Source of the DNA: Ylistrum balloti
Taxonomy: Eukaryota
Direction of reading: 5' to 3'
Length of the DNA stretch: 64,000 nt
NCBI RefSeq assembly: GCF_031769215.1
Contig: NW_026782393.1
Coordinates: forward strand, 62,001 to 126,000
Shown: piece after piece, positions 23,122 to 64,000 of the stretch
Numbering within the stretch: the stretch's first letter is position 1
Layout of the letters: every line of letters begins with the position of its first letter
Made by a program: the position numbers and the translations under genes
The notes under the pieces: generated by a model
The model's database searches: none
Seen by the model: the letters and a program-made list of their open reading frames with translations, nothing else
What the model was told of the DNA's origin: nothing

Positions 23122-25408
23122 ACCTAACGTCATCCATCACTCCTCACCTTGTCCACGAAGCCTAACGTCATCCATCACTCCTCACCTTGTCCACGAAGCC
23201 TAACGTCATCCATCTCTCATCACCTCATCCGTGAAACCTAACGTCATCCATCACTCCTCACCTTGTCCACGAAGCCTAACGTCATCCATCACTCCTCACC
23301 TTGTCCACGAAGCCTAACGTCATCCATCTCTCATCACCTCATCCGTGAAACCTAACGTCATCCATCACTCCTCACCTTGTCCACGAAGCCTAAAGTCATC
23401 CATCACTCCTCACCTTGTCCACGAAGCCTAACGTCATCCATCTCTCATCACCTCATCCGTGAAACCTAACGTCATCCATCACTCCTCACCTTGTCCACGA
23501 AGCCTAACGTCATCCATCTCTCATCACCTCATCCGTGAAACCTAACGTCATCCATCACTCCTCACCTTGTCCACGAAGCCTAACGTCATCCATCTCTCAT
23601 CACCTCATCCGTGAAACATAACGTCATCCATCACTCCTCAACTCATCCATGAAGCCTAACGTCATCCATCACTCCTCACTCCATCAATAAAAACCTAACG
23701 TCATCCATCAATCCTCACCTCATCCATAAAATCCTAACGTCATCCATCACTCCTCACCTCATCCATAAACCTAACGTCATCCATCACTCCTCACTTCATC
23801 CATAAAAACCAAACGTCATCCAACTCTCCTCACCTCATCCATAGAAACCTAACATCATCCATCACTCCTCACCTCATTCGTGAAACCTAACGTGATCCAT
23901 CACTCCTCACCTCATCCATAAAAACCTAACGTCATCCATCACTCCTCACCTCATCTATAAAAACCTAACGTCAGCCATCACTCCTTACCTCATCCATAAA
24001 GACCTAACGTCATCCATCACTCCTCTCCTCATCCATAAAAACCTAACGTCATCCATCACTCCTCTCCTCATCCGTGAAACCTAACGTCATCCATCACTCC
24101 TCTCCTCATCCATAAAAACCTAACGTCATCCATCACTCCTCTCCTCATCCATAAACCTAACGTCATCCATCACTCCTCTCCTCATCCGTGAAACCTAACG
24201 TCATCCATCACTCCTCTCCTCATCCATAAAAACCTAACGTCATCCATCACTCCTCTCCTCATCCATGAAACCTAACGTCATCCATCACTCCTCTCCTCAT
24301 CCATAAAAACCTAACGTCATCCATCACTCCTCTCCTCATCCATAAACCTAACGTCATCCATCACTCCTCACCTCATCCATAAACCTAACGTCATCCATCA
24401 CTCCTCACCTCATCCATAAACCTAACGTCATCCATCACTCCTCTCCTCATCCATGAAACCTAACGTCAATCATCACTTCTCACCTCATCCATAAAAACCT
24501 AACGTCATCCATCACTCCTCACCTCATCCATAAACCTAACGTCATCCATCACTCCTCTCCTCATCCATAAACCTAACGTCATCCATCACTCCTCACCTCA
24601 TCCATAAACCTAACGTCATCCATCACTAAACCTAACGTCATCCATCACTCCTCTCCTCATCCATAAACCTAACGTCAATCATCACTTCTCACCTCATCCA
24701 TAAAAACCTAACGTCAATCATCACTCCTCACCTCATCCATAAACCTAACGTCATCCATCACTTCTCACCTCATCCATAAACCTAACGTCATCCATCACTT
24801 CTCACCTCATCCATAAAAACCTAACGTCATCCATCACTCCTCACCTCATCCATAAAAACCTAACGTCAATCATCACTCCTCACCTCATCCATAAACCTAA
24901 CGTCATCCATCACTCCTCACCTCATCCATAAAAACCTAACGTCATCCATCACTCCTCACCTCATCCATAAACCTAACGTCATCCATCACTTCTCACCTCA
25001 TCCATAAAAACCTAACGTCAATCATCACTCCTCACCTCATCCATAAACCTAACGTCATCCATCACTCCTCTCCTCATCCATAAACCTAACGTCATCCATC
25101 ACTCCTCTCCTCATCCATAAACCTAACGTCATCCATCACTTCTCACCTCATCCATAAAAACCTAACGTCAATCATCACTCCTCACCTCATCCATAAACCT
25201 AACGTCATCCATCACTTCTCACTTTGTCCACGAAGCCTAACGTCATCCATCACTCCTCACCTCATTCATGAAACCTAACGTCATCCATCACTCCTCTCCT
25301 CATCCATGAAACCTAACGTCATCCATCACTTCTCACCTCATCCATAAAAACCTAACGTCATCCATCACTCCTCACCTCATCCATAAAATCCTAACGTCAT
25401 CCATCACT
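23122..25408. repeat. Minisatellite, 36-38-bp unit (cctaacgtcatccatcactcctcacctcatccataaa), about 60 copies
   Basis: Directly visible tandem array; unit starts at 23123, 23161, 23199... Confidence 0.97.
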
Positions 25409-27633: not shown

Positions 27634-30600
27634 TCAAAGGTCATCATCACCAGCAGAATCCATGATAGCACCACGGTAAGCTAAATCCCAGTACTGCTCC
27701 ACACCACACTTTTTAAAATGTTCACGAGCAAAAAGTTCTGTGGGACACACTTTAAATTTCATCTCACCAAATGCTCTTGCTGTTGTCGTTCCCTGAAATT
27801 TCAAAGAAAGATTAAGCATTAGTGATTTTTAAGGGACTGCAATGAAATCTCCAAACCTTCGTCATCCTGTCTTTGTGTAGCAACTACAGGAACACTAGTG
27901 ATCCACCAAACAATTATGTGGATATTACTCACAATATGTGTTGATAACCAAATATTTCAATTTGTGACAACCTCCCAAACAACGTGACATTTGCTTGACT
28001 ACAAATAACCTCCCACACAAAGTGACATTTGCTTGACTACAAATTTTCCTAACCTCCCAAACAAAGTGACATTTGCTTGACTACAAATTTTCCTAACCTC
28101 CCAAACAACGTGACATTTGCTTGACTACAAATTTTCCTAACCTCCCAAACAACGTGACATTTGCTTGACTACAAATTTTCCTTACCTCCCAAACAAAGTA
28201 ACATTTGCTTGACTACAAATTTTCCTAACCTCCCAAACAACGTGACATTTGCTTGACTACAAATTTTCCTAACCTCCCAAACAACGTGACATTTGCTTGA
28301 CTACAAATTTTCCTAACCTCCCAAACAAGATGACATTTGCTTGACTACAAATTTTCCTTACTTCCCAAAAAACGTGACATTTGCTTGACTACAAATTTCC
28401 TTTCCTCCAAACAAAGTGACATTTGCTTGACTACAAATTTTCCTTACCTCCCAAACAACGTGACATTTGCTTGACTACAAATTTTCCTTACCTCCCAAAC
28501 AAAGTGACATTTGCTTGACTACAAATTTTCCTTACCTCCCAAACAAGGTGACATTTGCTTGACTACAAATTTTCCTTACCTCCCAAACAAAGTGACATTT
28601 GCTTGACTACAAATTTTCCTTACCTCCCAAACAAGGTGACATTTGTTTGTTTTATCTGATTCCTCCTCAGAATCGCTGTCATCTAAAACAGTAAATATTT
28701 CTCATTCTTTGAAATATGTAAGAGTTTTCTTTTCATAGTTTTAAAAGCAGTCTCAAAGCACAAGGCAGGATTTATCCATTAGAAGGCAAGTTAGGGTCAT
28801 CGATGTTTGAAATTTCTTGACAGATGACATCTTTTCCTTCACTATGAATGAAATTCAAACATCCTTGTTAAATAGTTCAGGTGTAACAAAACGTGTCATC
28901 TTCATTCCAAAAGTCAGAGACCAATGCCTCATTTTCTGAGATATGGTATGAACACAAATGGATGCACTTTTAGAAAATAGAACTTTAAAAAATATTCTGA
29001 TATGTTTTTCCAAATTGTTCAACAGAGTTAAAATGAGGTCTCGATAAGAAAATAAAAGAATATTTATCATAAAGTTATCAAAACATTTTCAGTTCTATCT
29101 ATGCTGAGTTTTATCGACATATGAGCTGTAAGTATCTGTCTCCATCTCTAAGTGAGAAAATATTACAATGTTTAATATTCTAATGACCAAAATTCTAAAC
29201 CAGAAGAAAGTTTTATTTTTTTGAAGTCTTACCATCGTCTTTCTTTTTGCCTTTATGCTGGTCCTCTTCCCATTTTATTCGGTGTAACATCAACCTCTTA
29301 AACTTTCTTTGTTGTTTTGGGCCTACGAAATATACAAATTACGCAAATATTTAAAAAGGTTTTCTTCTTGATCTCATCTGTTAACATACTAACTTACACC
29401 TCATGAATTGTTTACTACATACAGAAAAAAACAACACACACCTACAAAAAAAAAAAAAAAAGGAAACCTAATTTAAAAATGATTTTCCTCTACTGTTAAG
29501 GTTCCATAAATTGTAACATTTTTCTACATCTTTTTCATGGTACAAAAGGATTTTTTTTAATTTCAACTATAAAATGTAAGTAGGATTTGAAAATTGTACA
29601 ATAACATAATTAAAGAATAATTTTGAAATGAAAGGCATAACTAATAGTAATTGATGATTTTCATACTGCTTGTTAGGTACATGTTCATCTTAGAAAAACA
29701 GAAAGTGAGACTCACCTTATGCTAGACAAATTAAAACAGCGAAAGTAACAACAAATATTTCCATGTTTAAACCTTAATAATTTCAACATTTCCAAAACCT
29801 TGAAATCTACGAAATTTTTCCACAATACTTTTGCGTTATTACACAAAATATCAAGATCACAAAAAAAAATATTAGACTCGATCTGTAAGATCTATTACGG
29901 TAACTGCCAGCACCATTAAAAGTTGTGGAATGTTGCACTGCATAAAGACTTACCTCCCTCTACAACCACAGCATTACAGTCCCTATAGAGCACCACAATT
30001 CCTGTCATGTATAGCTGTTTAGCATTAGTTTCGATCTTAAACTTTTTGGAGGCATTTGTTAAATCTCGTATCCTGTAACCAAAACAAAATCTATAAATAT
30101 TAGCTGGGGAACAGTCTTTCTGCTTGATGTCTTTCTGCTATCAATTTGTAAAAGGATGATGGTATAAACAGGATATTTTTAGCATAAACAGAAGTACTTG
30201 GAGTTTCTAGTCTTAATTCTAGTTTGCTTGAGGCATTCTGACAGAGTTCACTGCATCGTGAAACAGTCCAAATCATAAGAGGAGTGATTGATTTTGAAGT
30301 TGTAAGACCTCATTGATGACAAGTGAAATTTACTCCACAATGTTTATAATTTGTGCATGTTTTTATTTTGCTGGGTTTATTGTTCTGTGAACAGCCAGGG
30401 TCAACATACATCAATGTTGAAATTAGAAAGTCACAGAACTGATGAAAATGCATAAATTTTGTGAGTCACACATGATTTGTGTCTAAACCACAATACCAGA
30501 TTAGTTACACATTATATTTAGGGAACACATTTTATCACCACAAGACACTATATCTTAACTATTCAACCCTAAATCTCATTTAAATACAAATATAGAGACA

Positions 30601-33453
30601 ATCCTCACCTACCTATATACACTAACATGAACACCCAGTGATACATCCTCCTTGATTTTTTTGGCTTTCTTTTCCTTCCTCTGTTCTGAAGTTAACTTCC
30701 TTGCTGCATTTGTTTCCTCATGTTGTCTATTATTATAAATATTTCACATTGAAAGTCAGCACACTAGTTAAGTAATTTTATATTGGCATAACAACAAACA
30801 GGAATGTTATTGTTTTTCTTGTTGTTGTTTTTATTTACTTTACGGATCAATCACTGATCAGACGTACAAACAATAGCAATGCTGTCCCTCGGGACATTTC
30901 TATAGATGAGACAACACTCTGATGACTTACTTTTGGCGTTTTTCCATCTGTGCACGGACATGTGCCTCAATCTTCGTAGGATCTTGTACTGCTTCGTTCC
31001 CCAGAACTCTCATCAGGTTGGCCATCCTCACTGTAATACAAACAATTTCAAACCTAGAGGTCACATGTAGAGGTCAAGTATTAAAAACTGACCCACCTCA
31101 CTGTAATACAAACAATTTCAAACCTAGAGGTCACATGTAGAGGTCAAGTATTAAAAACTGACCCTCCTTACTGACCCTCCTCACTGTAATACAAACAATT
31201 TCAAACATAGAGGTCACATGTAGAGGTCAAGTATTAAAAACTGACCCACCTCACTGTAATACAAACAATTTCAAACCTAGAGGTCACATGTAGAGGTCAA
31301 GTATATAAAAACTCATGGACTTTCACTGTAATACAAACAATTTCAAATCTAGAGGTCACATGTAGAAAGGTCAAGTATTTGAAAAACTGACCCACCTCAC
31401 TGTAATACAAACAATTTCAAGACTTTTGCTTATTGAGATGAAGTCCTTTGTCACATGTGACCTTGAAAGTGGGCCAAGTATTGAACAAAAACTGCTATGG
31501 GCCAAGTATTAGCCCCCTAGGCCTTCTAGTATTTGAGAAGAAGTTACCTCTTGAAACTGTAATACAAACAATTTCAAATGCCACAGGCACAATATCAGCA
31601 ATCTGAGCCTTTTGGTTATTGAGAAGAAGTTGTTTAAAGTCACCTTTAAAGTGGGTCAAGGTCATGCATTTGAAGCAAACTTGGTAGTCCTTCATCCCAG
31701 CATGTCACAGGCCCAATATCTACACTCTGAGCCTTTTGGTTAATGAGAAGAAGTTGTTTAAAGATTTTAACATATTTGACCCCTGTGACCTTTAAAGTGG
31801 GTCAAGGTCATTCATTTGAACAAACTTGGTAGAGCTCCATGCCAGTATCCTCTGTGCCAAGTATACTAGTATTTGAAACGTTTGAATGAAAATTTCAAAC
31901 ATAGAGGTCACATGTAGAGGTCAAGTATTAAAAACTGACCCACCTCACTGTAATACAAACAATTTCAAACCTAGAGGTCACATGTAGAGGTCAAGTATTA
32001 AAAACTGACCCACCTCACTGTAATACAAACAATTTCAAATCTAGAGGTCACATGCAGAGGTCAAATATTAAAATACTGACCCTCCTTACTGACCCTCCTC
32101 ACTGTAATACAAACAATTTCAAACATAGAGGTCACATGTAGAGGTCAAATATTAAAATACTGACCCTCCTCACTGTAATACAAACAATTTCAAACATAGA
32201 GGTCACATGTAGAGGTCAAATGTTAAAACACTGACCCTTCCCACTGTAATAAAAAGAAGTTCAGACCCAGAGGTTAAAGTTCACACATAGTGGTCAAGTA
32301 CATTAAAACATTGAATGTCCTCATTGTTACACTAACAAGCTCAATCTTAAAGGTCAAACAAGTTCAATCTTAAAGGTCAAACAGATTCAAATGTAGAGGT
32401 CAAGATTTGAAACACTGGCAATTATGACTGTAACAAATGAGAAGTTCAAATGTTAAAGTAAAAGTTCAAGTGTAGATATGAAGTTACAATAGATTTGCCA
32501 TCCTCACTGTAACCATACACATTTTTTGAAGGTTTCAACCTTAAGGTCAAAGTTCAAATGTTACGGTCAAGTATTTAAATGAGTATCCTTCCTGTAACAC
32601 AAAGACATTCAATCGTAGATGTCAAAGTTTTAACTAAGGAATCAAAAGTTCAAATATTAATGTCTAGTAATAAAATATTGGCTATCCTTGCTTTGCAAAA
32701 TACCAGAGAAAATACACAATTAGGACCTATCCTGAACATAGTCACAAAGACTGAAAATGTGGCAATACTTCAATGGTCCAAATCAACAGCCCCCGGCAGC
32801 CATCTCGACATTTGTATGCCGCGTTTATTACTCCAGGAACAGTCAGGGTCATTTTAAGTCATGGTTGCCTTGTATAAACTTGTGATTACCTCACTGAACA
32901 ACACACAGGAGGCCCATCATGTGCCATCAAGAGCAATTGGGGTAAGGTACTTTGACGAACGCCACATCTTCATCAACATTAATTAATCCATTTCTCAGTT
33001 TCCAGAGAAACACCAACAACAGTGAGTAGGGGGTACCGAATCATGCATGCTGCGGAGGATCTTAACCCAAATATCACGTAGGTCAACATTCTGGATAAAT
33101 GAGTTATTGCTGCGCCCTGCCAGTCGTCCTGACTACCAGTAAACATACAATGTGTGACTTCACAACGAAGGCTATTACTGAACTTGGTCATGAAGTTTTG
33201 AGATCCTTATAAAAGGAAAAGACAGTATTATTTAAAGTTATTTAAAGTTCTACATCAACCCTTACCTTTTGGTTCTGGTGGAGGTTGCAAACCAAGTCGA
33301 ATCTTTTCTTGTTCATCTTTTTGAGCTTCCTGTCTGTTTTGACGTCGTAACTTCTTTCGCTCTTTCTTTGTGAGATAAACAGGAATCTCTGGGGCCTTCT
33401 CTGGTTCAGCTATCAAAGTCCATGAAGAAGAGTGAATAACCTTCCAGTCTCAG

Positions 33454-33506
<53 letters not shown>

Positions 33507-36500
33507 CGTGCGTGCGCGCGTGTGTGCATGTGTGTAACAATCATAAATACATATCTGTCACTGAATTACTAGGACCTGCCCTGAAGTTTGTCTAGTTCTC
33601 AAACCAAACTGTTAACCTTTCTTAAGATAAATAACATCTTTCATAACAAAAAGAATGCTTAGAAATAAGGAGTTGAAAGTGTAATTTCTACAGAGTATAG
33701 GAAAAAGAGAGAAAACAAATATTGAAAAAAAAAACACACACAATATATATATCTTCAGTATTACAGTTCATTTTACAATAAACACATCAGAATTCTTTTA
33801 ATGAACTGTAGGGTATATGTCAGTATTCAAGTCTCCATGAGTGGAGTATTGAAGGAGACGACACAGTCCCAATTTAATGTCTCAGGATACAATTACAATG
33901 TAGCAACAGTAATACTAGCACCGTACTCAACACCTGAGAATCACCATCACAACACACAGAATACTGTACTCAACACCTAAAAAGCACCATAACAACACCC
34001 AGAATACTGTACTCAACACCTGAGAATCTCCGTTACAACATACAGATTACTGTACTAAGTACACGAGAATCGTCAGAGGCTCCGTAAAATGATCAAATGA
34101 TCCCATGCATACTGAATCCTGTTAAACTGATCTTTCACATGCTTAACATGCCATGGGAAATAATCAAAATACTTGGTGTAAATCTCTTCACCCAAACAGC
34201 GTCTGTCTGTACAAACCTGGAGGCTTCATCTGTATCGGATGTTCCACTAGATTTGTAATACCATATAGTTTCTCTCGCTCAATGTTGCCTTCTTCTGCAT
34301 AACTGAAAATAAATGTGAAAAAAATGTTAAATTCCAAGGTAATTTTGATTGTGAAATTCAATTCTTTCAAATTGTTTCAGAATCAGTCGGTAGCTGTCAT
34401 TTTACGTATCTTTCAAATAGTTGAAACACTACTTATTTATTATGTTTTCCCTGCACTTCTCTGACAAAATAGATTTTGCGACAAATTTTTTATAAACCAT
34501 GCACTACTGAAAACTGTCCAGCTTTACAGTATTAAACAAGTAAAACATGTTTACTTTTACCTGTCAGCACCAGTAATAAACTTTTTAGCCAAATAGAGCT
34601 TTATCTAAAGAGCAAAGTTAATGTAGGGTATATGTCAGTATTCAAGACTCCATAAGTGGAGTATTGAAGGAGACGACACAGTCCCAATTTAATGTCTCAG
34701 GATACAATTACAATGTAGCAACAGTAATACTAGCACCGTACTCAACACCTGAGAATCACCATCACACAGAATATTGTACTCAACACCTGATAATCACCAT
34801 CACAACACACAGAATATGGTACTCAACACCTGAGAATCACCATCACAACACACAGAATATGGTACTCAACACCTGAGAATCACAACACATAGAATATGGT
34901 ACTCAACACCCGAGAATCACAATCACACAGAATATGGTACTCAACACCTGAGAATCACAATCACACAGAATATTGTACTCAACACCTGAGAATCACCATC
35001 ACAACACACAGAATATTGTACTCAACACCTGAGAATCACCATCACAACACACAGAATATTGTACTCAACACCTGAGAATCACCATCACAACACACAGAAT
35101 ATTGTACTCAACACCTGAGAATCACCATCACAACACACAGAATATGGTACTCAACACCTGAGAATCACAACACACAGAATACTGTACTCAACACCTGAGA
35201 ATCACCATCACAACACACAGAATATGGTACTCAACACCTGAGAATCACCATCACAACACACATGGTACTCAACACCTGAGAATCATCATCACATCACACA
35301 GAATATTGTACTCAACACCTGAGAATCACCATCACAACACACAGAATATTGTACTCAACACCTGAGAATCACAATCACACAGAATATTGTACTCAACACC
35401 GAATCAACATTACAAAGCACAAATACAGTACTCAATATATGAGTATCACATTTCAAGACACACAAAAATATACTCAAAAACAAGAAGATCCATTCCATTA
35501 CAAAGTCAATTTGACCATCTGTATTCCTTCAGAAAGTAACCATATTAAAATATTGTTCACAAGACTGGTAGGCAGTATATGCAGTCACATGGTTTACTTT
35601 ATTTACTGTCACAAGGGAGAGACTGCAGTCGGTAGGATTGTCAGGATTTTCTCTTTTGATAAAGGAAAATTTCTCACATGTTTTAAACAGATCATTAAAG
35701 TCTCAAATGAATTTAACTTTTAACTTTTGTTCTTGCTGGTACTATAAAACTCTTTTATCATACAAGTGACTAAGATCCTATGCTGCGGTTACCACTACAA
35801 ACATGTTCTGTCTACAGTGGTTGATCTTCTTTTTTTTTTAATTAGTTCTTCATGTTTTAATCCTAGTCCTGAATCTAAACTTCATAGTAATTTTTGTTCT
35901 TTTGATCACATCAACAGAAATGCACTGAACATTGTTTCTTAACTGGCTACTGATATCACCAGAATACATATCATGGAACACAGTTTCAAATAGCTTGACT
36001 TTAAGAAATATCTCTCCATTTAAGTTCTATCTAATTGCAATATCTATTACACTGAACAAAGTTTTATTGGAGAAGACGCTCAACAGAATTGTGGATAAAT
36101 CTGGATATCTGAACAGTCCATCAACCTAATACGTTTCTAACAGGAACAGGAAAAGTTCTCCAAGGATTATTTTAGTGGTTGTTAGATTCAACAACAACAA
36201 ACAACTAAACAAACAAACAAATGTAGGGTATATGTCAGTATTCAAGTCTCCATAAGTGGAGTATTGAAGGAGACGACACAGTCCCAATTTAATGTCTCAG
36301 GATACAATTACAATGCAGCAACAGTAATACTAGCACCGTACTCAACACCTGAGAATCACCATCACAACACACAGAATATTGTACTCAACACCTGAGAATC
36401 ACAACACACAGAATATGGTACTCAACACCTGAGAATCACCATCACAAGACACAGAGTATTGTACTCAACACCTGAGAATCACCATCACAACACATAGAAT

Positions 36501-39500
36501 ATTGTACTCAACACCTGAGAATCACCATCACACAGAATATGGTACTCAACACCTGAGAATCACAACACACAGAATATTGTACTCAACACCTGAGAATCAC
36601 CATCACACAGAATATGGTACTCAACACCTGAGAATCACAACACACAGAATATGGTACTCAACACCTGTGAATCACCATCACAACACACAGAATATGGTAC
36701 TCAACACCTGAGAATCACCATCACAACACACAGAATATGGTACTCAACACCTGAGAATCACAATCACAACACATAGAATATTGTACTCAACACCTGAGAA
36801 TCACAATCACAACACATAGAATATTGTACTCAACACCTGAGAATCACCATCACATAGAATATGGTACTCAACACCTGAGAATCACCATCACAACACATTG
36901 AATACTGTACTCAGTTCTTGAGAATCACCATCACAACACAATGAATAATGTACTCAGTTCTTGAGAATCACCATCACAACACACAGAATATGGTACTCAA
37001 CACCTGAGAATCACCATCACACAGAATATTGTACTCAACACCTGAGAATCACCATCACACAGAATATGGTACTCAACACCTGAGAATCACCATCACAACA
37101 CACTGAATACTGTACTCAGTTCTTGAGAATCACCATCACAACACACTGAATACTGTACTCAGTTCTTGAGAATCACCATCACAACACACAGAATATGGTA
37201 CTCAACACCTGAGAATCACCATCACACAGAATATTGTACTCAACACCTGAGAATCACCATCACACAGAATATGGTACTCAACACATTAAAATCACCATCA
37301 CAACACACTGAATATTGTACTCAACACCTGAAAATCACCATAACAACACCCAGAATATTGTACTCAACACCTGAGAATCACCATCACAACACACAGAATA
37401 TTGTACTCAGTTCTTGAGAATCACCATTACAGGACAATGAACTTACTGATCTCCTGTCAGGACATAAGCATCCCACCATTCCATGTCTGGAACCTCACCT
37501 TCTTGCTGTGAAGGTAGAACAGTACACACTATTTAGATATGCCAAGAAATGATATATACTTTACCTACTATTCCAATTTAATAATCCTAGTTCCCTTCGG
37601 TCAGGGAAATATTGGCCCCATACACAAGATGAATACATTATTAGTTTTCATTAATTGTCAAACCAAATTGTTTATCTAATTTTAATGAAACTGGAAACTA
37701 GACAATCTGGTTGTAGCATACTTTACTTCAATTAATTTCTGTATGTATTTACTTATTTTTTTGTAAATGACCTAGGGATTAAAATTTGAATGGCCAAAAA
37801 TGCTAATATGCAACCATACCAGTTCTTTCTTTGGAGCAAGTGTTGCTAATTTTGCTGCAGATGCAATTCCAGTCTTCTTGGCTGCGTAGGCAATTTCATT
37901 CTGCAGTCTGTCTAACTGTGCCTGCAGCAAGATAACAATAAGATACTGAGTTTACAAAAGAAAAAAAAAATGCCAAGTCTATGATTGAGATATACATACT
38001 GTCAAATTTGATATGAAAATGTTTTTTAAAAAAAAAATTGGATAATGAGGGCCAGATTTTCTCAGGGATTTATATTGTTAATTAAACTTTACACCTGCCA
38101 AAACTTCATATGCAAAAACATTCAAGGAGAAATGACTTAATTTCAAACTGACATTTTTTGTTCAATGATTGGAAATCAAATAGGAAAACTAAGAAAAATC
38201 ATCTATATTGTCTAATATTATAGATCTCTCAAATATAAGGTTTCAAATGACCTTTGCTCGAAGCCTGCCAGCCATTTGTTCAAACTTTCCAATTTCATGG
38301 AACTTGAAGGAACGTCTTTGTCTCTGGGCACTCTTTGCCCTGAAAAAAAATCATATGTAATTTGATTTCAAAATATCTGATATAACAGTCATACATTAAA
38401 TATATCATGCATATAATTTCCTACATCATGATATACCAGTTTCAACATTTGTCTGTTCTATCAGTGATAAACCTTGTAAGAACCAACCATACTGCCACCA
38501 GTAGATATGTGGTCAGTATAAATTTAGAGTGCATCTATTTTCTTATCATGGCCAGACATTCTGTGGTCAATTTCATTCCTGAAGTCCTGAAGTGAATAAT
38601 GTTTGATGTTGTTTCACAATAGAAATTTCATATTTTCGCAGTGGTTACATTAATATTAGCCAACAACGTTCTGAGTGATATTATCACATCTTGTTTCAAT
38701 GTGCAGAAACATTAAAGACAAAAATTAAATGACTTAACTTCGATCATCATGCAAAATTTGAAATTTGAAAAAGTGGATGGTAGAAGGGAGATAATCACAT
38801 TACATAACAACCCAATAAATGCTATTGAAGCTATAGAAAATTGATTTGGCAAGACAGGAGAAACTTTTAGTGTTAACATGATGTACAATTCAAATTCTTC
38901 TTTCCAGGTGAGTTTTTCAAGTTTTTCCTAATAAGAAGCAATTAGATATCAATACACCTAATTATACACCACACACCTGTGTGAACTGGCTATATGGTAT
39001 GGTCCAAGTGACTTCCAGTTTTGACAGGTTGTACAGTATTTTCAAAATTTGTTTTCATCAAATTGAATTATAATATCTGAGGCAACTCTATAAACTTTCT
39101 TTCCCTGATTTATTTTTAAATCTTTATTTTAGAAAGATTTTTCATTACCATACATATACAAGACAAAAGCACACCCTCACACACAAAAACATTCCTTCTT
39201 GTACATATTTTAACATCACAGCAACCTCAAGATACCATGACCATCATGTAACAATATTACAATTAACTTTAAATTAAAAAAATATCAACCACAAAAATTG
39301 TCTTAAAAAAAAAACAAAAAAACAAGAGGCCCATGGGCCTTAACGGTCATCTGACAAAAAATACAAGATTTCAAATTTTGAACTTGAGAAGAAGTCGAAA
39401 ATGTGTTTTCAAGATGGCGGCCATGTTGAATTTCGGACCAACCCGAAATTAACAAACTTTGGTCAGGATCATGTCATGATCATTTCAGGTAAGTTTCAGC

Positions 39501-42500
39501 TCAATGAGACATGTAGAACTTGAGAAGAAGTTGAAAATGTTTACGACCTACGACACTGGACAAAAGGCGATTGCAATAGGTCACCAGACCCTTTGGTCAG
39601 ATGATCTAAAAAAACTCATTGTGTGTTCTTATTGCAATGCTTCATCAGTATAGCACAAAAATGGAACAATACAATCTTTAATCAAAATCTGTTTCAACTA
39701 CACCGGTTAATTTATGATATTACTTACTCAACTCTGGAATCAAAGAATCGACTTTCACTGATTTCTTCTGGTGGTTTCTCTATCAATCCTTTGAATTGTT
39801 CACGTCTTTTTGCTCGGATATTTGCCTAAAAATACCAAAATTAATTTTCTAATCTTGATGTTCACAGCAGTCAGTTGGAAACATATATTTCCAATTATTT
39901 TTTGTAATAGGAGACATTTGTAGTCATACTGTGTTAGTCTATAGTAACTGAACAATATAAGTACACACGACGTCGTACTAACAAGGTACTATCAAAAGTG
40001 TCCATGTAATGCAGAATTTCTGACAATACATTCAATGGCGTGATTTTCCATCAAGTAAAATCTGAGAATTCTTACGTCCATATTTGCGGAATTCTGTATT
40101 CTTTATTATCATATAAAGTCATCAAAGACTCATTTCATCGAAATGTCACAAAAATATTCAATAAATTTAACATCACATGATCACAAAAGTTTAATATTCT
40201 TTTTATGATTTTTCATAACAAGTTTTTCATTCAAATGAACACTTCATTTGTTGAGATATTTTTCAAGTTCTAGTGTGTATATATATCTGTTATCCATGCC
40301 TTTAATGTATTAGTATTGTGACATTTAATTTTAATTCCATTGCTGCTTTAAATATCTGACCTTGAGCGTGGGTGTATGATGCTGTAGTTGGACTGCTTGT
40401 CCTGTCATAGCATCTATTGTTCTTCCTTCCTCATCTAAAATCAGGGGTGTTGGTCTACAACACAAACATAACATCATCTTATATCTATCAGGGGTGTTGG
40501 TCTACAACACAAACATAACATCATCTTATATCTATCAGGGGTGTTGGTCTACAACACAAACATAACATCATCTTATATCTATCAGGGGTGTTGGTCTACA
40601 ACACAAACATAACATCATCTTATATCTATCAGGGGTGTTGGTCTACAACACAAACATAACATCATCTTATATCTATCAGGGGTGTTGGTCTACAACACAA
40701 ACATAAAATCATTCAATATCTTTCAATATCGACTGTCCACAACACAAACATGAAATTATTTTTTATTTTCTCATTGAATTTTATAAATGAAGTAATTTGT
40801 AGTTCCTTTTTGTTCTGTTTATGTGATATTTTCCTTATTGAGGTTTATCACAGTTTTATTACATGATATAGTAGAAGAAAACAATAATTACAAACTAAAT
40901 CAACACATATTTTTTTAGATGGTCCTATACTTGTTGTGACAAACCATAACAAATGTGTTGCTTAAGCTTGAGTACAATATTGGTTTCAACAATAAGCTAG
41001 TGCCTAAATATTTACCCACTCATAAATACAGCTGTTTGATAAAATTTTACTGTTTGATGGCCCTAATGACCTTTTATGTGGATGGGCTGTTAAGAATGTA
41101 ATAATAATAATAATAATAATAATTGATAAAATTATACATCAAAGGCATTACGTTGTCTGGTGACAAGTCCATCACCTGGTTTTGAGTACAATGCAGTACG
41201 TCTACCACTTAAACTGTATTACAAGATTAAGTTGTGGGATTGCACGATGTTACATGATGTGCTATGTGCACATGATGATTTCACAATAGGTAGACAGGAC
41301 GAAATTAGTTATCACACACCTGTGCATACTTTGTGTGATTCTATCATGGTTGATATCAATTTAGAAATCACTTATAGACGAGTGTAAGTATGGTTTATTT
41401 ATTTTCTTAATATATAAAAGAACACATTTCCTACTCCAGCTATTTATCTATAGCTTAGACTCATATATGTATCTATCAGGTACAGAGTGAATAGTTATAT
41501 ACTCATAATCTAACACGTTTTGTTCATAAAGTGCAACACATGACCAGTCTTTGTGTACAAACCAGGGCTCTCACACCCCATTTTGGGACTGGGGCCCGGG
41601 GCCCTTAGAATTGGGAAAAATAGCGGCGTTTTCCTTAGAATTAGGAAAACTTGGGGTTTAAATTGGGAAAAAAAGATACTATTTTACATTGGGAACGGGG
41701 CCGAATATCGGCCCCAAATCTGGCAAATCGAGAGCCATGCAAACTCTCATTAGATATATATTATTTAAGAAGAACATTAACTGGACATCTCTTTTCTTCG
41801 CGGCAATGAATCATTTAAATTATTATATCATCTGAAAGAAATTTTATTTTCTATACTTCTGTATTAGTCTCATTTTTCTATCATTTTGTAAACAAAAAAT
41901 ATATACTAGGGTGAATTTTAAGTGTCGTCATTATTACACCATCTTCAATACTCCAGGGGTTTAACGATCACTTTCGCTCACTTCACACCCTGGAACATAT
42001 CATGGCAAAATTGGAGGCACATGATAAGTACTTTGATTGCCTCCGTTTGATGTTTCATCTTGCCCAAAAGGTGTCGCACCAGGAACCTTCAGTTTTGCCA
42101 TGACATGTTCCAAGGGTGCAGAGAGCGAAAGTGATCATATTCCCTAGAGTATCGAGGGTGTTGTTACATGAAAGACTTAGCCAGTACGTATCTGGACCTG
42201 TCATGTATGTACATATATCAATATAAAGGTAATTTTTGTTCCCTAAGGCACACCACTTGTCACTCTCTCAGGTGTGAAATAAACGGCAGAAAAGTTAATT
42301 TATGCAGGATTTAAAATTAAAAAATTAAAAATGACATTTATAATCACTGATCTCTATTTAGTTATAACTATGTAAGTTTTCTGTTCAATTTTTAATCTGT
42401 AAAAATTAGTCAACCATTTTTACCAAACCCCCTTGAAAATGTGTATGGTGCATTTGTGTGGACGATGTTTTTGGTTTGATGTGTCTTACTACAACTGTAG

Positions 42501-45212
42501 ATATATTATGTTATGAAGATTTTAGCACTTACTTGTTTTGTAAAGGGAGCTGTTTCCTGTAGCAACAAATAAAAACTTCGTTAAAGAAGGCATGCAAAGT
42601 GACTAAGATCATATCAGATTTTTTTTTATCAAGTTAATATTTTATTGACAAATCCATCAAGTGTGACCAAAACTCATAATCAAAGCCACTAATAGCTATG
42701 TATTCAAAAACATTTTTTAAAAACTTCCTGTTTTTGAATAAGTACCTCATTTTTCAAGTGTACAAAAATTTTAATATTTTGTTAACTGATATGATTGGAT
42801 TGAACTGTTTTGGTTCCGTTATTCAATGTAATCAATAATACTGAGGTACTTACAAATTAGGAATCTGTACCCCTGATGCTGTGAGACTGGACATCTTATT
42901 CTGTATCATTGCCTGGAGTTCAGCTGCTCGTTTAGCCTTCTCCATGGCATCTGACATTAACACTTGAGTTTGAGACATGGACGGCTGTAAAACCAACAAG
43001 GTCACAAATTTTGTATTGAATTTAAGCATAATTGAATTTTAAGAACACTGTTTATTAACTGTTTTGGGATTTTTGAAAACCATAAAATCTCTGAATAATT
43101 AAACCATTAGATTTTATTGTTTTAATGATTTGCTTGCAAGTGATAGTTGAAATTTTTTTTTATCTTCCTCGTTGGCAAATGTCAAAACTTTTGAAGTTTA
43201 TCAAATAAATTGGCATTTCAGAAAGGAAGTAATAACCAATTCAGGTAAAGTATCATTTTTGATTTCTAACACCAGTGGAATGAAAACAAACCTTTGAAGC
43301 AGATGGCACAGTCACCATCAACTGTGTTTTTCTTTCTTCAATTATTTTCTGTGCATTCTGCATCATCTCTTTGATCTGTTGGCCATAAGTTTGATATGAT
43401 TAATAACATTTTGTACATACAGTTTTGTGAAAGGTTACAAAATTAAATATAATTGTGAACTATTGCTTCATTCATAACTATTGACCTACTCCTGATATAA
43501 AATTGATTCCCTTCACTCTAGGATGATTTAGACGAAATTGGAACAAATTTTCAACATTCCTACAGAGGAAGAAGGATTTTAAATAATTTTTCGCCCTTTT
43601 CTTTATTGAGCCCCAACCCTCCAGGGAGCAGAGACCCATCATTTATACAAAATTTAGTCTCCTTTACCTACGAAAGTTTCAGACCATTTTTGGACAAATT
43701 CAATACTGTATTTTGCTGCACTGTCTGATCTGATAAAAAGTTTCCACGGAGAATAAAAATAAAAGATAATATAAAAGCTATCTGAGTTTCATCAAAGTAA
43801 ATTTGAGAGAGATATAGGACTCACCTTGTCAGTAGTGAGCTGGCCAGGACTTGGGTTCCCAGGTCCAGGAATGGCGGGCGGACCATCATCGACAAATCTC
43901 CTCTTCCTTTTAGTTTCTGTTCCTTCATCACGATCATCCTAAAACATATTTAGTATCATAATTCTGATAATAAGGGACACGGAAATACCAGGTTAATTGT
44001 TATGAGACTGTTGAACTTCATGGTTACATATTTAACACAGCACTACTCTTATATATGGCCCTCAAAAGCAACAAACATCACCATATAGAAACAATATGTG
44101 ATGACAGGGAAAAACAAAGTTTGTATAAGTCAATATCATGATTATCATCAGTGTATAAGTGACTGAGAATTTTTGGCAAAAAAAATCATTTTGTTAGTTA
44201 AAATACATATACAAGATTTTTCTTTCACATTCTAACTCTATTTGAAAATAAATACTGAGGCAAAAGTTTTTTTTAAAATCTGTTAGTAAATTGTACCAAC
44301 ATTTAACTATACAGCACAGTGAAAGAATTATGGGATGATTTTAACCAATTATTCCTCGCTGGTGAAATCAAAGAATTTCAAATTTTCATCTGATGAATAA
44401 CAAATTTGAAGTGCTTGATTACTATATTTTACATAACATAGTTTCCCTTGCATTTTCACACCCAATTCATTGTCATGTAATTGTGGTAAGCACCTTTCTC
44501 TTCTTCCTTGCATTTCTGTTGGATGCTTTGTAATCTTCCCAAACTCCGAATAACTTGTCAGCGAAGCGCTTTGCCTGACCTTCATCTAGAATCACCAGCA
44601 ATTTATCTGTGAAGTATAAAATCAGACACATTAATCATATGAATATCAGGATGTGATTAAGAAGAAAACAATTTTTTGGAGTATTCATTTGAAGCTGAAT
44701 TCTTTACAATTTGTTGAATAAATTCAGAAAACAATTTTTTAAACCAACATACAACCCAACCATTCATTTGTACTGGTACACTATGAAAGCAGGCAGACAC
44801 TAAGACAGATATAAAAGTTATACAATTCATGTTTACAAATGTGTGCTCATTATAAAATGCAATTAAATTTAATTCAAATGCAAAAGTAAATAATGATTTA
44901 GGGAGAGAAACATATTGTAAGAAATTATCTTGATCAAAGGCTGCTGAAGATAAAATTTATAAACATACGAAATAAAAAAATATATAAATGATTTGCTAGT
45001 GGTTTCTTGCTGTCTTTACAGACAGTCAGACTTAAGGTTTCTCACATTGACAAATGCCGAGACTTACCTACAGTTTTGTGTTTATCATAACCTTTATCTA
45101 TGCAGTTGAGAGCTGCTGTAACCAGAGCTGTCTCACTGAATCCTAAAAATTTCTGAACAGTTTTATCCAACAAAGCCTTCAAGTCATCCCATTCTCTGTC
45201 TGACAAAGACAT
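27634..45212 (-). CDS. PRPF3: U4/U6 small nuclear ribonucleoprotein Prp3 (632 aa, 19 coding exons)
   Basis: Exons 45212-45068, 44606-44494, 43938-43825, 43375-43316, 42984-42854, 42556-42533, 40454-40361, 39825-39728, 38339-38252, 37921-37820, 37505-37447, 34302-34217, 33409-33266, 31030-30931, 30726-30613, 30072-29954, 29322-29233, 28682-28624, 27792-27634; all GT-AG, phases consistent, total 1899 nt. PWI-like start ([17 protein letters not shown]), [87 protein letters not shown] match recalled PRPF3 motifs. Confidence 0.97.
27968..28645. repeat. 44-bp tandem repeat made of the 3' end of PRPF3 coding exon 18 plus its 5' splice site (16 units including the genuine one)
   Basis: Minus-strand unit aaatgtcac(c/t)ttgtttgggag|gtaaggaaaatttgtagtcaagc; acctccc motif recurs at 28622, 28578, 28534, 28490, 28446 ... 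27970. Confidence 0.93.
31025..32600. repeat. 70-bp tandem repeat made of the 3' splice site plus first bases of PRPF3 coding exon 14 (about 12 clear copies plus degenerate ones)
   Basis: Minus-strand unit ...gtttgaaattgtttgtattacag|TGAGG; ctgtaataca at 31031 (genuine), 31101 and onward; interrupted by an unrelated insertion at about 31430-31890. Confidence 0.9.
31430..31890. mobile_element. Fragment of a common bivalve non-autonomous (HINE/Helentron-like) repeat inserted in the 70-bp array
   Basis: Recurring gtgacctt(g/t)aaagtgggtcaaggtca, aacaaacttggtag and gagaagaagtt motifs, also seen at 39321-39611; family assignment from recall. Confidence 0.45.
32890..33205 (-). other. Candidate alternative (poison or terminal) exon in PRPF3 coding intron 13
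   Basis: Acceptor ctgtcttttccttttataag|G (33207/33205); donor GTGAG|gtaatc (32890/32889); in frame with the upstream exon for 75 codons to TAA at 32981-32979; AATAAA on - at 32829-32824. Confidence 0.45.
33456..33533. repeat. (GT)n microsatellite with (GC)/(GCGT) tail
   Basis: Directly visible, in PRPF3 coding intron 12. Confidence 0.95.
33807..34060. mobile_element. Composite element copy 1: about 120-bp head plus short minisatellite
   Basis: Head tgtagggtatatgtcagtattcaagtctcca...ctagcaccg followed by about 3 actcaacacctgagaatcaccatcacaacacacagaat units. Confidence 0.75.
34622..35410. mobile_element. Composite element copy 2: same head plus longer 38-43-bp minisatellite
   Basis: Head near-identical to 33807 and 36222; tandem units directly visible. 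Confidence 0.8.
36222..37425. mobile_element. Composite element copy 3: same head plus about 1.1-kb minisatellite
   Basis: Head near-identical to the other two; array ends about 20 nt from the PRPF3 donor at 37446. Confidence 0.8.
39321..39611. mobile_element. HINE/Helentron-like non-autonomous element
   Basis: Starts aacaagaggcccatgggcc, contains gatggcggccatgtt and gagaagaag blocks, ends with hairpin ggtcaccagaccctttggtcagatgatct then aaaaaaa; matches my recollection of an abundant oyster repeat family. Confidence 0.6.
40440..40708. repeat. 47-bp tandem repeat made of the 3' splice site plus first 15 nt of PRPF3 coding exon 7 (6 copies)
   Basis: Minus-strand unit agatataagatgatgttatgtttgtgttgtag|ACCAACACCCCTGAT; tcaggggtgt at 40441, 40488, 40535, 40582, 40629, 40676. 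Confidence 0.93.
41563..41739. mobile_element. MITE with 10-bp TIRs and a 5-bp flanking direct repeat
   Basis: caaac|CAGGGCTCTC ... GAGAGCCATG|caaac (one TIR mismatch); internal palindromes ggggcccggggccc and ggggccgaatatcggcccc. Confidence 0.7.
41936..42161. mobile_element. Fold-back MITE with about 80-bp imperfect inverted arms
   Basis: Left acacc..gatcactttcgctc..ggaacatatcatggcaaaattggagg pairs with right ccttcagttttgccatgacatgttcc..gagcgaaagtgatc..ggtgt. Confidence 0.75.
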
Positions 45213-47009: not shown

Positions 47010-47160
47010 NNNNNNNNNNNNNNNNNNNNNNNNNNNNNNNNNNNNNNNNNNNNNNNNNNNNNNNNNNNNNNNNNNNNNNNNNNNNNNNNNNNNNNNNNNN
47101 NNNNNNNNNNNNNNNNNNNNNNNNNNNNNNNNNNNNNNNNNNNNNNNNNNNNNNNNNNNN
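47010..47160. other. Assembly gap (151 N)
   Basis: Run of N between PRPF3 and the BMP gene. Confidence 1.
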
Positions 47161-49429: not shown

Positions 49430-52400
49430 ATGGATTTGCGATCAGGTATCACGGTTCTACTAGTGTGTGTGACGTATTTACACGTGCGTTTCACTGCTGC
49501 CACAGTGTCCGGAGTGTACAGGGACAACGGAGTGGACAGGACAGAACGGACAACTGAATTCTCGAACCGGGATAAACGAGAAATGCAGCATGAAATATTG
49601 ACTTTGTTGGGACTCCACCATCGTCCAAAACCAGCTGGACACAGTACAACAGACTATTCGGCCCCACGCTTTATGCTGAATCTATACAATTCCATCACAT
49701 CAGACGGGGGTATCGTAGACGAGGGAAACCAGCGTCAGTTCAGTCGAAACGTCACAATCGAAAATCAGGTTGAACCTATCGACGGCAGTGACGTCATCAT
49801 GAGTTTTGTTAACCACGGTGAGTAATTAACGACACTGTCTACATCCCTGTTATAATTAAACGAGTTATTAAAATGTCAAAATTACTTGGGACTGAAAAAC
49901 TATCGAATGTGCACGTAGAAATGTATTACAGCATATGTACAACGTTCTCTCCTATTTTCACATACAATACTGTCTTCAAAACAGCCTTTTTGTCTACAAC
50001 TTTCACGGACCTAAAACCACCCAACATTCTTTATTGTATATAAATTCCTTATAGATTTATATATTCGGTATATGTTTTTCCTTACCAAGGTTGACGACTA
50101 TCAAAAACATATTTAGGAGAGAAGTAAGCGACATACCTATTCATAGTTGTACTAGTTTCTGATATATTTATCAACTGACTGTCTTTTTTTTTTTTTTTTT
50201 TTAGATATTTCTTGGATCTGTAGCATTAATGTTCTTGTATATAACGTTTTCTGATAGGATAGAAATCCGTCCATTGTAATAAAACAAACCCGAAATCTAG
50301 GGTATACAATTGTCATTCACATACTGTTTGACAGTTGGATAACACATCATTTTGTATCGACACGTAAGTTGCATACCATATTTTTAATTAGAGCTGAAAA
50401 TGTATACAATTTTCACTGGTATATTCATCTGAGAATAACAATTTGTTGATAAGATTAATTAGAATCGCAATTATCTTTAAATCATTTTAAGTACATTACT
50501 GTAAGGACATGTCGGATAAATTTCCGTATAAGTAACACTTTTCCATGGGTACAAAACCTGATGTAGCATTAAAACTCTTAGATATACACCTATTTTGTGT
50601 ATAGAGCTTCGAGTACAAATGCATATTTACTGTTACACAAAGTTATGGGCACAGTTTCAGTCTCTTGTTATACAAAGTTCTTGGGATACAAATATATTTA
50701 TAGCATCTTATTCTACAAAGTACTAAGTATACAAAGTTCTTGGGGTACAAATATATTTATAGCATCTTATTCTACAAAGTACTAAGTATACAAAGTTCTT
50801 GGGATACAAATATATTTATAGCATCTTATACAAATACTAAGTATACAAAGTTCTTGGGGTACAAATATATTTATAGCATCTTATTCTACAAAGTACTAAG
50901 TATACAAAGTTCTTGGGGTACAAATATATTTATAGCATTTTATTCTACAAAGTACTAAGTATACTAAGTTCTAGTGTTAATTGATGTTATTTTTATACGT
51001 GCATATTCTCGAAGAAATTTTTTTTTCACGATTTTATTTCATTTACCAACATTTTAAACGTACAGCTAATCATTTATTGTTATTATCCACTTTTTTACCC
51101 CTCTTAAATAAAACACAACACGTCGATTTCCCGGTCTCCAACACAATCAATTAAAACTACGTATGAATTATGGTCATACGTGCTGTCTACGTCAAATTTG
51201 ACATGAAACACTCGACACTATAATAATAAATGTAATGATGGATTACCCTTCCGCGGGCCCCCGGCGAGTTTTCCATTGATCATCAGGGTCATGTACTTAT
51301 GATGGGTAAAATGTTTACCATTGTGCTTTGTGTTGAAGTTTAAAACTTTACGATTTAGTGATAATCTGCCTCGATTACACGGCCGTGAGGCCAGGTGTTT
51401 GAACGATAGGCTCTTGTGTAGATTTAGACGGTTACTAGATGACTTCGTCAACTCCTCACACGTAAATTAAAGTTTATTGACGAGGTCTAGTTAGCTTTTA
51501 GGGATATTCGTTTCACCAAAAAATGGCTATGATATATTGCATAAGCTCAAACTAGTTTCACGGCGTTAGTCAACGTAACGTGTTCACGTGTTTTACGCTG
51601 TTTTCAGAAAGGTGATTGATTTTTGAAAATTCAAACATAAAATAAGTTAATATATGCAGAGACGTACATATCACATATATACGTCTCTGATAGATGTAGT
51701 TAAGATTTTACAATTACAACGATTCTGATTTAAGAAATTGTTGACGTATTGGTGTGAAAATATTCAGAACATAGATAAGAATTTACAGATGTTTTTTTCT
51801 ACTAGTGGTATATTAGGCGCGTGTACCGGTCAAATTTTAATTGAAGCACACCTCTCCTAATTGTGTAATAAAGTCCAATAACGCCCCTTAAACATATAGA
51901 TACAATGAAGTTTCATATCGCAATGTAGATTTACAATGTAGAATCATAGCAAACATATTTGTAGTAACATATCACATATGTAATATATGATTGTACGATT
52001 TTTATATCTATATATTTTACCTACTTATCTACTCTGTATGGCCGTTACCGTAGTAAATGAATAAAAGTGTACAAATGTGTAGAAATTAAGTTTATTACAA
52101 AGGTACTACGTAACATGCATACGAGTGTGTATGCCCCCCACCCCTCCTCTCTCGGTCTCGCTGTAGCCGTATGAACATTTTTGTACCGATAGATAACATC
52201 CTTGCGTTGCCATGCTTTTTGTTAGTAAACAGAGATCAGAATCACTTGCATTTTATGGAAGGGAAATTATCTCAAAATAATCTGATGCTTTCTGTAAACT
52301 TTCCCGTCACTGTACGGCAAAACAACTTCAATAGGATCAACGGGGATTTCGTCACGTCCTTATCTAGAACGTAAATCACACAAAATTTTGGAAGATTCAC

Positions 52401-61989: not shown

Positions 61990-62700
61990 CTGATGGTCCT
62001 GAACACCGCCTGTGATGGTCCTTAACATCGCCTGTGATGGCCCTTTACATCGCTGATGATATCACTTAACATCGCTATTGATGGTCCTTAACATCGATTG
62101 TGTTGGTCCTTAACATCACTGATGATGGTCCTTAACAACACTGATGATATCTCTTAACATCACTGATGATGGCCCTTAACATCACTGATGATGATCCTAA
62201 ACATCGCTGATGATATCACTTAACATCGCTATTGATGGTCCTTAACATCGATTGTATTGGTCCTTATCATCACTGATGATGGTCCTTAACAACACTGATG
62301 ATGGTCCTTAACAACAATGATGATATCACTTAACATCACTGATGATGGTCCTTAACATTACTGATGATGATCCTAAACATCGCTGATGATATCACTTAAC
62401 ATCGCTATTGATGGTCCTTAACATCGATTGTGTTGGTACTTAACATCATTGATGATGGTCCTTAACAACACTGATGATATCACTTAACATCACTGATGAT
62501 GGTCCTTAACATCACTGATGATGATCCTAAACATCGCTGATGGTATTACTTAACATCACTGATGATAGTCCTTAACATTGCTTGTGATGATCCTTAACAA
62601 CGTTGACGATATTACTTAACATCGCTATTGGTGGTTCTTAACATCGTTAATGATATTAGTTAACATCGCTGATGATGGTCCTAAACCGCCTGTGATGATA
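61990..62700. repeat. 22-bp minisatellite (gatgatggtccttaacatcact) with higher-order blocks
   Basis: Directly visible; variant block gatatcacttaacatcgctattgatgg recurs at about 62058, 62212, 62388. Confidence 0.93.
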
Positions 62701-63049
62701 CTTAAATAGAACATAACATGGTTATCCAAATCGGACAAGATACTAATCACGGCTATAGATAAGTGGTACATGTGACGATACACTGATTCACCTGTCCGAG
62801 TCATGGGATGGATTTTATAAAGGTGTTGACATACTTATATATTAAATATGTATAGTTTTAAGTACATGTACAGATAACTTATTTATTACGATATGAAATC
62901 ATTCAATCTATCAATGGCGTCGACTGTGGAGGACCCAATAGAGAAGCGAGTAAGTAAATGGAGTATGACGTGAGTAAATTATTCATATAATCATTTTCAT
63001 TGTTTATATATGTAAGTTTACTGTAAATATACAGTAAAACAACGATATC

Positions 63050-64000
63050 CTGTCCCTAGCTTATATACAGTATATCTTGATATAATGCCTGTCTATAACA
63101 TACAGTAAACCTCGATATAGCGTCCCTAGCTTATATACAGTATATATTGATATAATGCCTGTCTATAACATACAGTAAACCTCGATATAGCGTCCCTAGC
63201 TTATATACAGTATATATTGATATAATGCCTGTCTATAACATACAGTAAACCTCGATATAGCGTCCCTAGCTTATATACAGTATATATTGATATAATGCCT
63301 GTCTATAACATACAGTAAACCGCGATATAGCGTCCCTAGCTTATATACAGTATATCTTGATATAATGCCTGTCTGTAATATACAGTAAACCGCGATATAC
63401 CGTCCCTAGCTTATATAAAGTATATCTTCATATAATGCCTGTCTGTAATACAGTAAACCTCGATATAGCGTCCCTAGCTTATATACAATATATCTTGATA
63501 TACTCTCTGTCTGTAACATACAGTTAACTCGATATACCGTCCCTAGCTTATATACAGTATATCTTGATATACTGTCTGTCTGTAATACAAGTTAACCTCG
63601 ATATACCGTCCCTAGCTTATTATATACAATATACAATGTATCTTGATATAATATCTCTCTGTAATAAACAGCTAACCTCGATATACTGTTCCTAGCTTAT
63701 ATACAGTATATCTTGATATAATGCCTGTCTATAATATACAGTAAACCTCGATATACCGTCCCTAGCTCATATACAATATATCTTGATATAATGTCTGTCT
63801 GTAATACAAGTTTACCTCGATATACCGTCCCTAGCTTATATACAGTATATGTTCATATAATGCCTGTCTGTAATATACCTTTAACGTCGATATACTGTCC
63901 CTAGCTTATATACAGTATATCTTGATATAATGCCTGTCTGTAATACAGTTAACCTCGATATAGCGTCCCTAGCTTATATACAGTATATCTTGATATAATG
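63050..64000. repeat. 70-bp satellite (two related 35-bp halves), continuing past the window end
   Basis: gtccctagc at 63052, 63122, 63192...; halves tacagtatatcttgatataatgcctgtctataaca and tacagtaaacctcgatatagcgtccctagcttata. Confidence 0.95.

Follow-up and report, generated by a model that had tools for sequence, protein, structure and literature searches.

Minisatellites across three exon-intron junctions of the scallop gene PRPF3: probable near-neutral products of repeat turnover

When the splice sites of an essential spliceosome gene have been copied many times over beside the originals, do the copies serve to regulate that gene, or are they carried along silently by a genome rich in repeats? 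The question is raised by PRPF3 of the saucer scallop Ylistrum balloti, whose 19 exons lie on the minus strand of a 64,000-nucleotide (nt) stretch of DNA (positions 62,001 to 126,000 of contig NW_026782393.1 in RefSeq assembly GCF_031769215.1), hereafter called the window. Three of its exon-intron boundaries, namely the donor of exon 18 and the acceptors of exons 14 and 7, are each overlapped by a tandem array, here termed A1, A2 and A3, respectively. We consider it likely that these are three independent, lineage-specific and near-neutral junction minisatellites of the "mirage" type known from amphioxus, and we hold with good confidence that they tell of the repeat dynamics of the genome and not of PRPF3 regulation.

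The arrays and the exons they overlap

The exon model was derived by exact protein-to-genome spliced mapping of the RefSeq protein XP_060077700.1 (P0248), the spliced mapping of PRPF3 proteins being run with a minimum exon length. The exons of the window match this protein and XP_060077701.1 (P0150) at 100%, the PRPF3 span agrees base for base with GCA_031769215.1, and the encoded protein contains the Pfam domains PWI, PRP3 and Prp3_C. In coordinates of the window, the arrays and the exons that concern them are:

27634-45212, minus strand: PRPF3 coding span, from the ATG at 45212 to the stop at 27634 (exact mapping of XP_060077700.1)
27970-28649, minus strand: array A1, 44-bp unit, 16 copies, in intron 18, the last intron (Tandem Repeats Finder and exon model)
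31026-31420, minus strand: exon-proximal block of array A2, 70-bp unit, 6 acceptor copies including the authentic site (Tandem Repeats Finder and exon model)
31891-32274, minus strand: distal block of array A2, 5 further copies of the 70-bp acceptor unit (Tandem Repeats Finder and copy-by-copy reading)
31421-31890, no strand assigned: interspersed high-copy element of about 470 bp that splits A2 (contig depth and the 8-bp target-site duplication TTGAAATT)
40440-40712, minus strand: array A3, 47-bp unit, 6 identical acceptor copies (Tandem Repeats Finder and exon model)
27634-27792, minus strand: exon 19, the last coding exon, including the stop codon (spliced protein mapping and RNA contigs)
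28624-28682, minus strand: exon 18 (59 nt), with the authentic donor just after 28624 (spliced protein mapping and the RNA contig joint in runs X6 and X7)
30931-31030, minus strand: exon 14, with the authentic acceptor just before 31030 (spliced protein mapping and RNA contigs)
33266-33409, minus strand: exon 13, the upstream partner of the A2 intron (spliced protein mapping and RNA contigs)
40361-40454, minus strand: exon 7, with the authentic acceptor just before 40454 (protein-based model only)
42533-42556, minus strand: exon 6, a 24-nt micro-exon, the upstream partner of the A3 intron (protein comparison and spliced mapping)

The initial annotation had recognized the gene as PRPF3, together with its strand logic and three mutually unrelated arrays, with units of 44, 70 and 47 bp, that straddle exon boundaries and carry intact GT or AG signals; Tandem Repeats Finder and the exon model jointly confirm this description.

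Array A1 (44 bp x 15.6, 94% matches by Tandem Repeats Finder) overlaps exon 18 by 26 nt at its donor, and its unit consists of the last 21 nt of that exon, the donor and 23 nt of intron 18. Copies 1-5 present the identical strong donor GGGAG/GTAAGG (a slash marks the exon-intron boundary here and below), and 14 of the 15 pseudo-donors retain GT, which is missing from copy 6; most distal copies (8-10 and 12-14) read GTTAGG. Copies 1-2 and 3-4 form two identical double units of 88 bp, which places the most recent duplication at the exon-proximal end of the array. Within copies 1-5 (28448-28644), a single codon, CTT, TTT or GTT (Leu, Phe or Val at residue 585), distinguishes the pseudo-copies from the authentic end of the exon, and unequal exchange inside A1 could thus replace amino acid 585 in the real exon 18. 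At the equivalent exon end, other scallops have CHLVWE or CYLVWE.

Array A2 holds 11 exon 14 acceptors distributed over its two blocks, ten of them pseudo-acceptors with an intact polypyrimidine tract and AG. It repeats ttgtttgtattacag/TGAGG (the acceptor reads tattacag/TGAGG) and overlaps exon 14 by only 5-6 nt; Tandem Repeats Finder describes the exon-proximal block as 70 bp x 5.4, with 83% matches. In three other scallops the exon 14 acceptor is single-copy, and the tract and AG of A2 are homologous to it, so that the unit can be traced to the junction itself. The element separating the two blocks reaches a depth of 5e3-3e5 in DNA contigs, against a baseline of about 15; it breaks one A2 unit and has the duplicated TTGAAATT on both flanks. 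It is a transposable element that was inserted into an already existing array, and it is present in RNA contigs too. The converse proposal, that a transposable element was the origin of the exon 14 acceptor, was rejected, given the homology of tract and AG to the single-copy acceptors of other scallops and the later arrival of the element.

Array A3 (47 bp x 5.8, 99% matches by the same program) overlaps exon 7 by 15 nt at its acceptor, each unit being made up of 32 nt of intron 6, with polypyrimidine tract and AG, and the first 15 nt of exon 7. The six identical acceptors read tgtttgtgttgtag/ACCAACACCCCTGAT, five of them being pseudo-acceptors, and one older, degenerate copy reaches to about 40767. 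Every 47-bp unit (40455-40712) ends in CCTGAT, which brings a branch-point-like CTGAT motif to a position 33 nt upstream of the AG of the next unit; judged from sequence, all copies but the first may use a branch point of exon-derived sequence, given by the preceding unit. Copy identity (83% in A2, 94% in A1 and 99% in A3), together with the insertion that splits A2, indicates an order of age in which A2 is the oldest, A1 intermediate and A3 very young.

That the arrays exist as DNA was one of the points on which the initial annotation could have failed. Contigs of two other individuals (X1 and X2, from two other studies) enter A1 from its unique flanks and A2 from exon 14, and then break; inside A1, the depth of these DNA contigs is several-fold above baseline. 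Both individuals differ from the reference at shared single-nucleotide polymorphisms, and one of them shows unit variants. Because independent contigs run from unique flank into the arrays, and because depth is raised in A1, the arrays are real: A1 and A2 are not artefacts of the reference assembly, their copy numbers being those of the reference since short-read contigs break at the array edges.

Splice-site use and the products expected from pseudo-sites

Evidence on splicing comes from the assembled contigs of two runs, X6 and X7, over the A1/A2 region; such contigs show the major isoform only. The fraction of sampled words present in the two runs is 0.14, the same as the proportion of the stretch that is exonic, and their contigs are spliced, i.e., derived from RNA. 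Contig records 17 and 20 link exons 13 through 19. The joint between exons 18 and 19 (27791->28623, cut +1, GT..AG on the minus strand), found in both X6 and X7, employs the first, exon-proximal donor of A1, and in records 17 and 20 exon 13 (33266) is joined straight to 31030, the exon-proximal acceptor of A2. Among the RNA contigs of X6 and X7, in which the major isoform is represented and minor isoforms drop out, none has a pseudo-site junction of A1 or A2. A search for Ylistrum transcript fragments over exons 5-10, the A3 region, found none, and the exon-proximal acceptor of A3 is the used site as predicted by the RefSeq protein model. Canonical junctions are kept in both RefSeq isoforms and in all transcript-derived PRPF3 proteins of scallops.

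Other variants of the transcript and protein were seen or considered. Exon 15 (30613-30726; 114 nt, in frame, between the PRP3 and Prp3_C parts) is skipped in the protein designated RefSeq isoform X2 (P0150, 602 aa) and is present in the RNA contigs of X6 and X7. A 651-aa scallop protein (P0252) was rejected as an in-frame pseudo-site isoform, its additional residues being an N-terminal extension with no insertion at a junction. Recursive splicing at A2, by way of the acceptor and then of a GTGGGT 4 nt further on, was likewise rejected, as the mRNA would keep 4 extra bases.

None of the unit lengths (44, 70 and 47) is a multiple of 3, and the expectation that adjacent copies would disrupt the reading frame was borne out when an mRNA was built for each copy: every alternative copy in A1, A2 and A3 leads to a premature stop. 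By the rule that governs nonsense-mediated decay (NMD), a stop must precede the last exon junction by more than 50-55 nt. The distance is at least 84 nt for all copies of A2, all copies of A3 and copies 4 onward of A1, the products of which would be classical NMD substrates, whereas those of A1 copies 2 and 3 would not. It is the position of A1 in the last intron that leaves the stops of its two nearest pseudo-donors outside NMD eligibility; pseudo-donor 2 gives a stop 34 nt into the last exon and pseudo-donor 3 a stop 40 nt ahead of the last junction, and the products of both would be proteins without the last 52 residues.

Other scallops and known junction repeats

The PRPF3 loci of Pecten maximus (L001), Argopecten irradians (L002) and Mizuhopecten yessoensis (L004) were compared with that of Y. 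balloti and have the same 19 exons. An array at the exon 7 acceptor, the exon 14 acceptor or the exon 18 donor is absent from all three. Intron 5 of P. maximus (L001 3938-5050) holds about 20 tandem echoes, in 47- and 60-bp units, of the last 20 nt of exon 5 and an intact GTAAGT donor; this array, at a junction where Y. balloti is single-copy, is larger than any donor array of the window. The exon 17 acceptor is accompanied by one extra copy in P. maximus (L001 22192-22302; 54 bp x 2.1, taking in 11-12 exon nt) and by four in M. yessoensis (L004 23836-24093; 57 bp x 4.5, 17-18 exon nt), the different exon breakpoints reflecting either recurrent birth or the remodelling of one old array. M. yessoensis also has a 38-bp x 10 array that starts inside the exon 12 donor (CAG/GTAGTA echoing CAG/GTTTGT), and the PRPF3 of A. 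irradians has no junction array. Because other scallops thus carry arrays at different PRPF3 junctions, we conclude that such arrays arise and vanish quickly across pectinids, and that the three found in Y. balloti are lineage-specific.

Tandem repeats across exon-intron boundaries are known as "mirages" in the amphioxus genes for Adh3, the globins BflGb6 and BflGb9, troponin C and PGBD5, where they occur at both 5' and 3' boundaries, leave splicing undisturbed, have units of 10-160 bp and vary in copy number between haplotypes (PMC3087553, PMC3902484). The three PRPF3 arrays share the structural traits by which a mirage is recognized. Each is a head-to-tail repeat of at least two copies with a unit of 10-200 bp, its terminal unit spans the real boundary, and the splice signal is repeated in other units; 5' and 3' boundaries are both represented, many copies retain GT or AG, and the major transcript is spliced normally, with the exon-adjoining site used in mRNA according to RNA contigs for A1 and A2 and predicted as the used site of A3 by the RefSeq model. 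They differ from the amphioxus examples in that they belong to a bivalve mollusc, reach higher copy numbers (up to 16, and about 20 in P. maximus) and occur three to a single gene.

Among human genes, intron 7 of F7 (IVS7) contains a 37-bp variable number tandem repeat in which identical pseudo-donors are functional yet silent, the most upstream donor being chosen by 5'->3' scanning (50 constructs); further donor-junction minisatellites are found in IFI6 (6-16), CBS (IVS13), LMNB2 and PDGF, and IFI6 and CBS use their two nearest pseudo-donors as well (PMC1557585). As in F7, the first unit of A1 spans the boundary between exon and donor, identical pseudo-donors follow, and RNA contigs show use of the first donor. 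Unlike these human cases, which are donor arrays, two of the three PRPF3 arrays are acceptor arrays. There is also a likeness to unproductive splicing coupled to NMD (poison exons; regulated unproductive splicing and translation, RUST), in that any use of a pseudo-site would introduce a premature stop into a splicing-factor gene, at a distance of more than 50-55 nt from the last junction for all copies of A2 and A3 and for A1 from copy 4 on. As a rule, poison elements show deep conservation, and the isoforms that they produce can be detected. The PRPF3 arrays, in contrast, are species-specific, with no conservation in the three relatives; no such isoform appears in the RNA contigs, and one array is situated in the last intron.

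Taken together with these precedents, the arrays would be accounted for by three separate tandem duplications, each of a short segment across an exon-intron boundary and each followed by growth into the intron through slippage or unequal exchange. The copy adjoining the exon body would stay the real splice site, and the remaining copies would be pseudo-sites essentially silent in the main transcript. At the donor array A1, by analogy with the scanning described for F7, splicing would take the 5' splice site that comes first after the exon; at the acceptor arrays A2 and A3 it would take the copy that runs on unbroken into the exon body and the donor beyond it, presumably by exon definition. Occasional use of a pseudo-site would produce an NMD substrate in the case of A2, A3 and distal A1, and a truncated protein in the case of A1 copies 2-3. 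Tolerance of the arrays would then follow from a splice-site choice in favour of the copy next to the exon body.

Repeat background, chance and rival explanations

Repeats of other kinds are distributed through the window and the introns of PRPF3. Four further arrays (23122-25408, 50669-50972, 61991-62705 and 63021-64000) show no exon at their edges, as judged without exon models of the neighbouring genes; to this partial extent the earlier statement that the other four genes of the window are without junction arrays has been checked. The array at 23122-25408, which falls outside the called coding ranges, repeats a 38-bp unit about 60 times and displays, on the minus strand, the donor-like sequences GAG/GTGAGG and GAC/GTTAGG in every unit; it was rejected as a fourth junction array, as no exon adjoins it and it sits between the coding ranges of PRPF3 and a SAM-domain gene. 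Introns 11 and 12 contain a 43-bp minisatellite family in three blocks (33919-34056, 34738-35477 and 36338-37431), which have closely similar flanks and the same open reading frame text beside each. This shared flanking sequence suggests that the blocks are copies of a transposable element with an internal minisatellite, rather than local duplications. A further repeated element in intron 13 (32858-33051) has a DNA-contig depth of about 1000, against the baseline of about 15, and shows no more than a trace of RNA, in X7. A masked run of N at 47010-47160 falls outside the arrays under study.

Whether three junction arrays exceed chance depends on the null that is adopted, an event model saying that they do and a coverage model that they do not. 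In the event model, a seed duplication of the observed unit length was placed at random, seeds being excluded if they fell entirely within an exon or took in an entire one. For PRPF3 of Y. balloti this gives an expectation of 0.4-0.6 junction arrays against the observed 3 (P 0.005-0.017, post hoc); for the three orthologs, which were not selected for arrays, 4 were observed against 2.3 expected (P 0.18, not significant); and for units of at most 100 bp pooled over four species, 7 against 1.5 (P 4e-4, post hoc). The coverage model starts from the repeat content of the introns. Across the four PRPF3 loci, 12-31% of intronic bases lie inside arrays, about a quarter of the intronic DNA of Y. balloti PRPF3 is tandem repeat, and 12-34% of random intronic 24-mers are echoed within the same intron, as compared with 6 of 144 junction 24-mers; on this basis, more than three junction arrays are expected. 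On such sequence counts, three in one gene is unusual, yet a very repeat-prone genome could produce it, the more so as the locus was picked from a very large scan. The initial annotation had rightly named chance slippage in a repeat-prone genome as the null.

The excess seen under the event model is the chief argument for a mutational bias, by which minisatellites in the genomes of pectinids would start preferentially at splice junctions, owing for instance to DNA damage or repair coupled to transcription or splicing there. The differing breakpoints at the exon 17 acceptor of P. maximus and M. yessoensis suggest recurrence and point the same way. Set against this, the tests were made post hoc, on a locus that had been ascertained; the unselected orthologs give no significant excess, junction 24-mers are echoed less often than random intronic ones, A. 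irradians has no junction array, and no mechanism is known. We regard such a bias as rather unlikely; it concerns origin only and is compatible with functionally silent arrays. A broader proposal, in which junctions are preferred seeds via splicing- or transcription-coupled duplication and, in addition, polymorphic arrays measurably shift the output of PRPF3 and other essential genes, either because pseudo-sites see minor use or because U1 or U2AF is recruited, strikes us as improbable. Misassembly or over-expansion of the arrays in the reference is scarcely credible: it could draw on the fact that short-read contigs do not span the arrays, so that the reference copy number stands alone, but it has to contend with the contigs of two other individuals that enter A1 and the exon 14 edge of A2 from unique flanks, with the raised depth in A1 and the unit variants, and with similar arrays in the independently assembled genomes of other scallops.

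The initial annotation had put forward a regulatory function, with array length as a heritable dial on PRPF3 output: copy number would set the use of pseudo-sites, NMD would remove the products, and PRPF3 dosage would be tuned thereby, perhaps as a feedback loop. Such feedback is conceivable, PRPF3 being itself a tri-snRNP (small nuclear ribonucleoprotein) component; each pseudo-site would produce a premature stop, mostly within reach of NMD; five donors and six acceptors are identical in sequence to the authentic sites; and in human IFI6 and CBS the nearest pseudo-donors are in constitutive use. The evidence gathered here runs the other way. RNA contigs show exon-proximal junctions only, at A1 and A2, the identical pseudo-donors of F7 are silent, and no feedback element was identified. 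Above all, regulation of this kind is disfavoured because the arrays lack conservation in three other scallops and because A1 sits in the last intron, where copies 2 and 3 escape the 50-nt rule. The dial also loses support from the other scallops, which carry arrays of this kind at different PRPF3 junctions. Altogether we judge the dial very unlikely. The alternative that had been offered beside it, that the locus shows how splice-site arrays are tolerated, is the one favoured by exon-proximal use in RNA contigs, the lack of conservation and the repeat-rich introns.

Near-neutrality, we infer, is the most likely condition of the arrays, and several considerations weigh against it. The event-based excess means that junctions may be favoured seeds, which pure neutrality leaves unexplained. 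The RNA contigs represent the major isoform and are compatible with minor use of pseudo-sites; in human IFI6 and CBS, the two nearest pseudo-donors are in use. Our reason for the success of the exon-proximal acceptor is itself inferred. At A3, exon-proximal choice is predicted from a protein model; the six acceptors of that array do not differ in sequence, and the preceding unit may furnish each of them with a CTGAT branch point.

As three independent, probably near-neutral mirages, the arrays by themselves reveal no new regulatory mechanism, and the main use of the locus is as a substrate for experiments on splice-site selection. It offers a natural test of how splice sites are chosen in a gene that is both essential and well expressed, where five identical strong donors in a row and six identical acceptors coexist with a main transcript that, as far as checked, is correctly spliced. 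The repeat type is already known from amphioxus and a few human genes, and bivalves are here added to its range. The locus may also inform work on exon definition and scanning among identical sites, on intron growth and on the origin of new introns. Within the scallops, it documents a rapid turnover in which one and the same gene has come to carry different junction arrays in different species.

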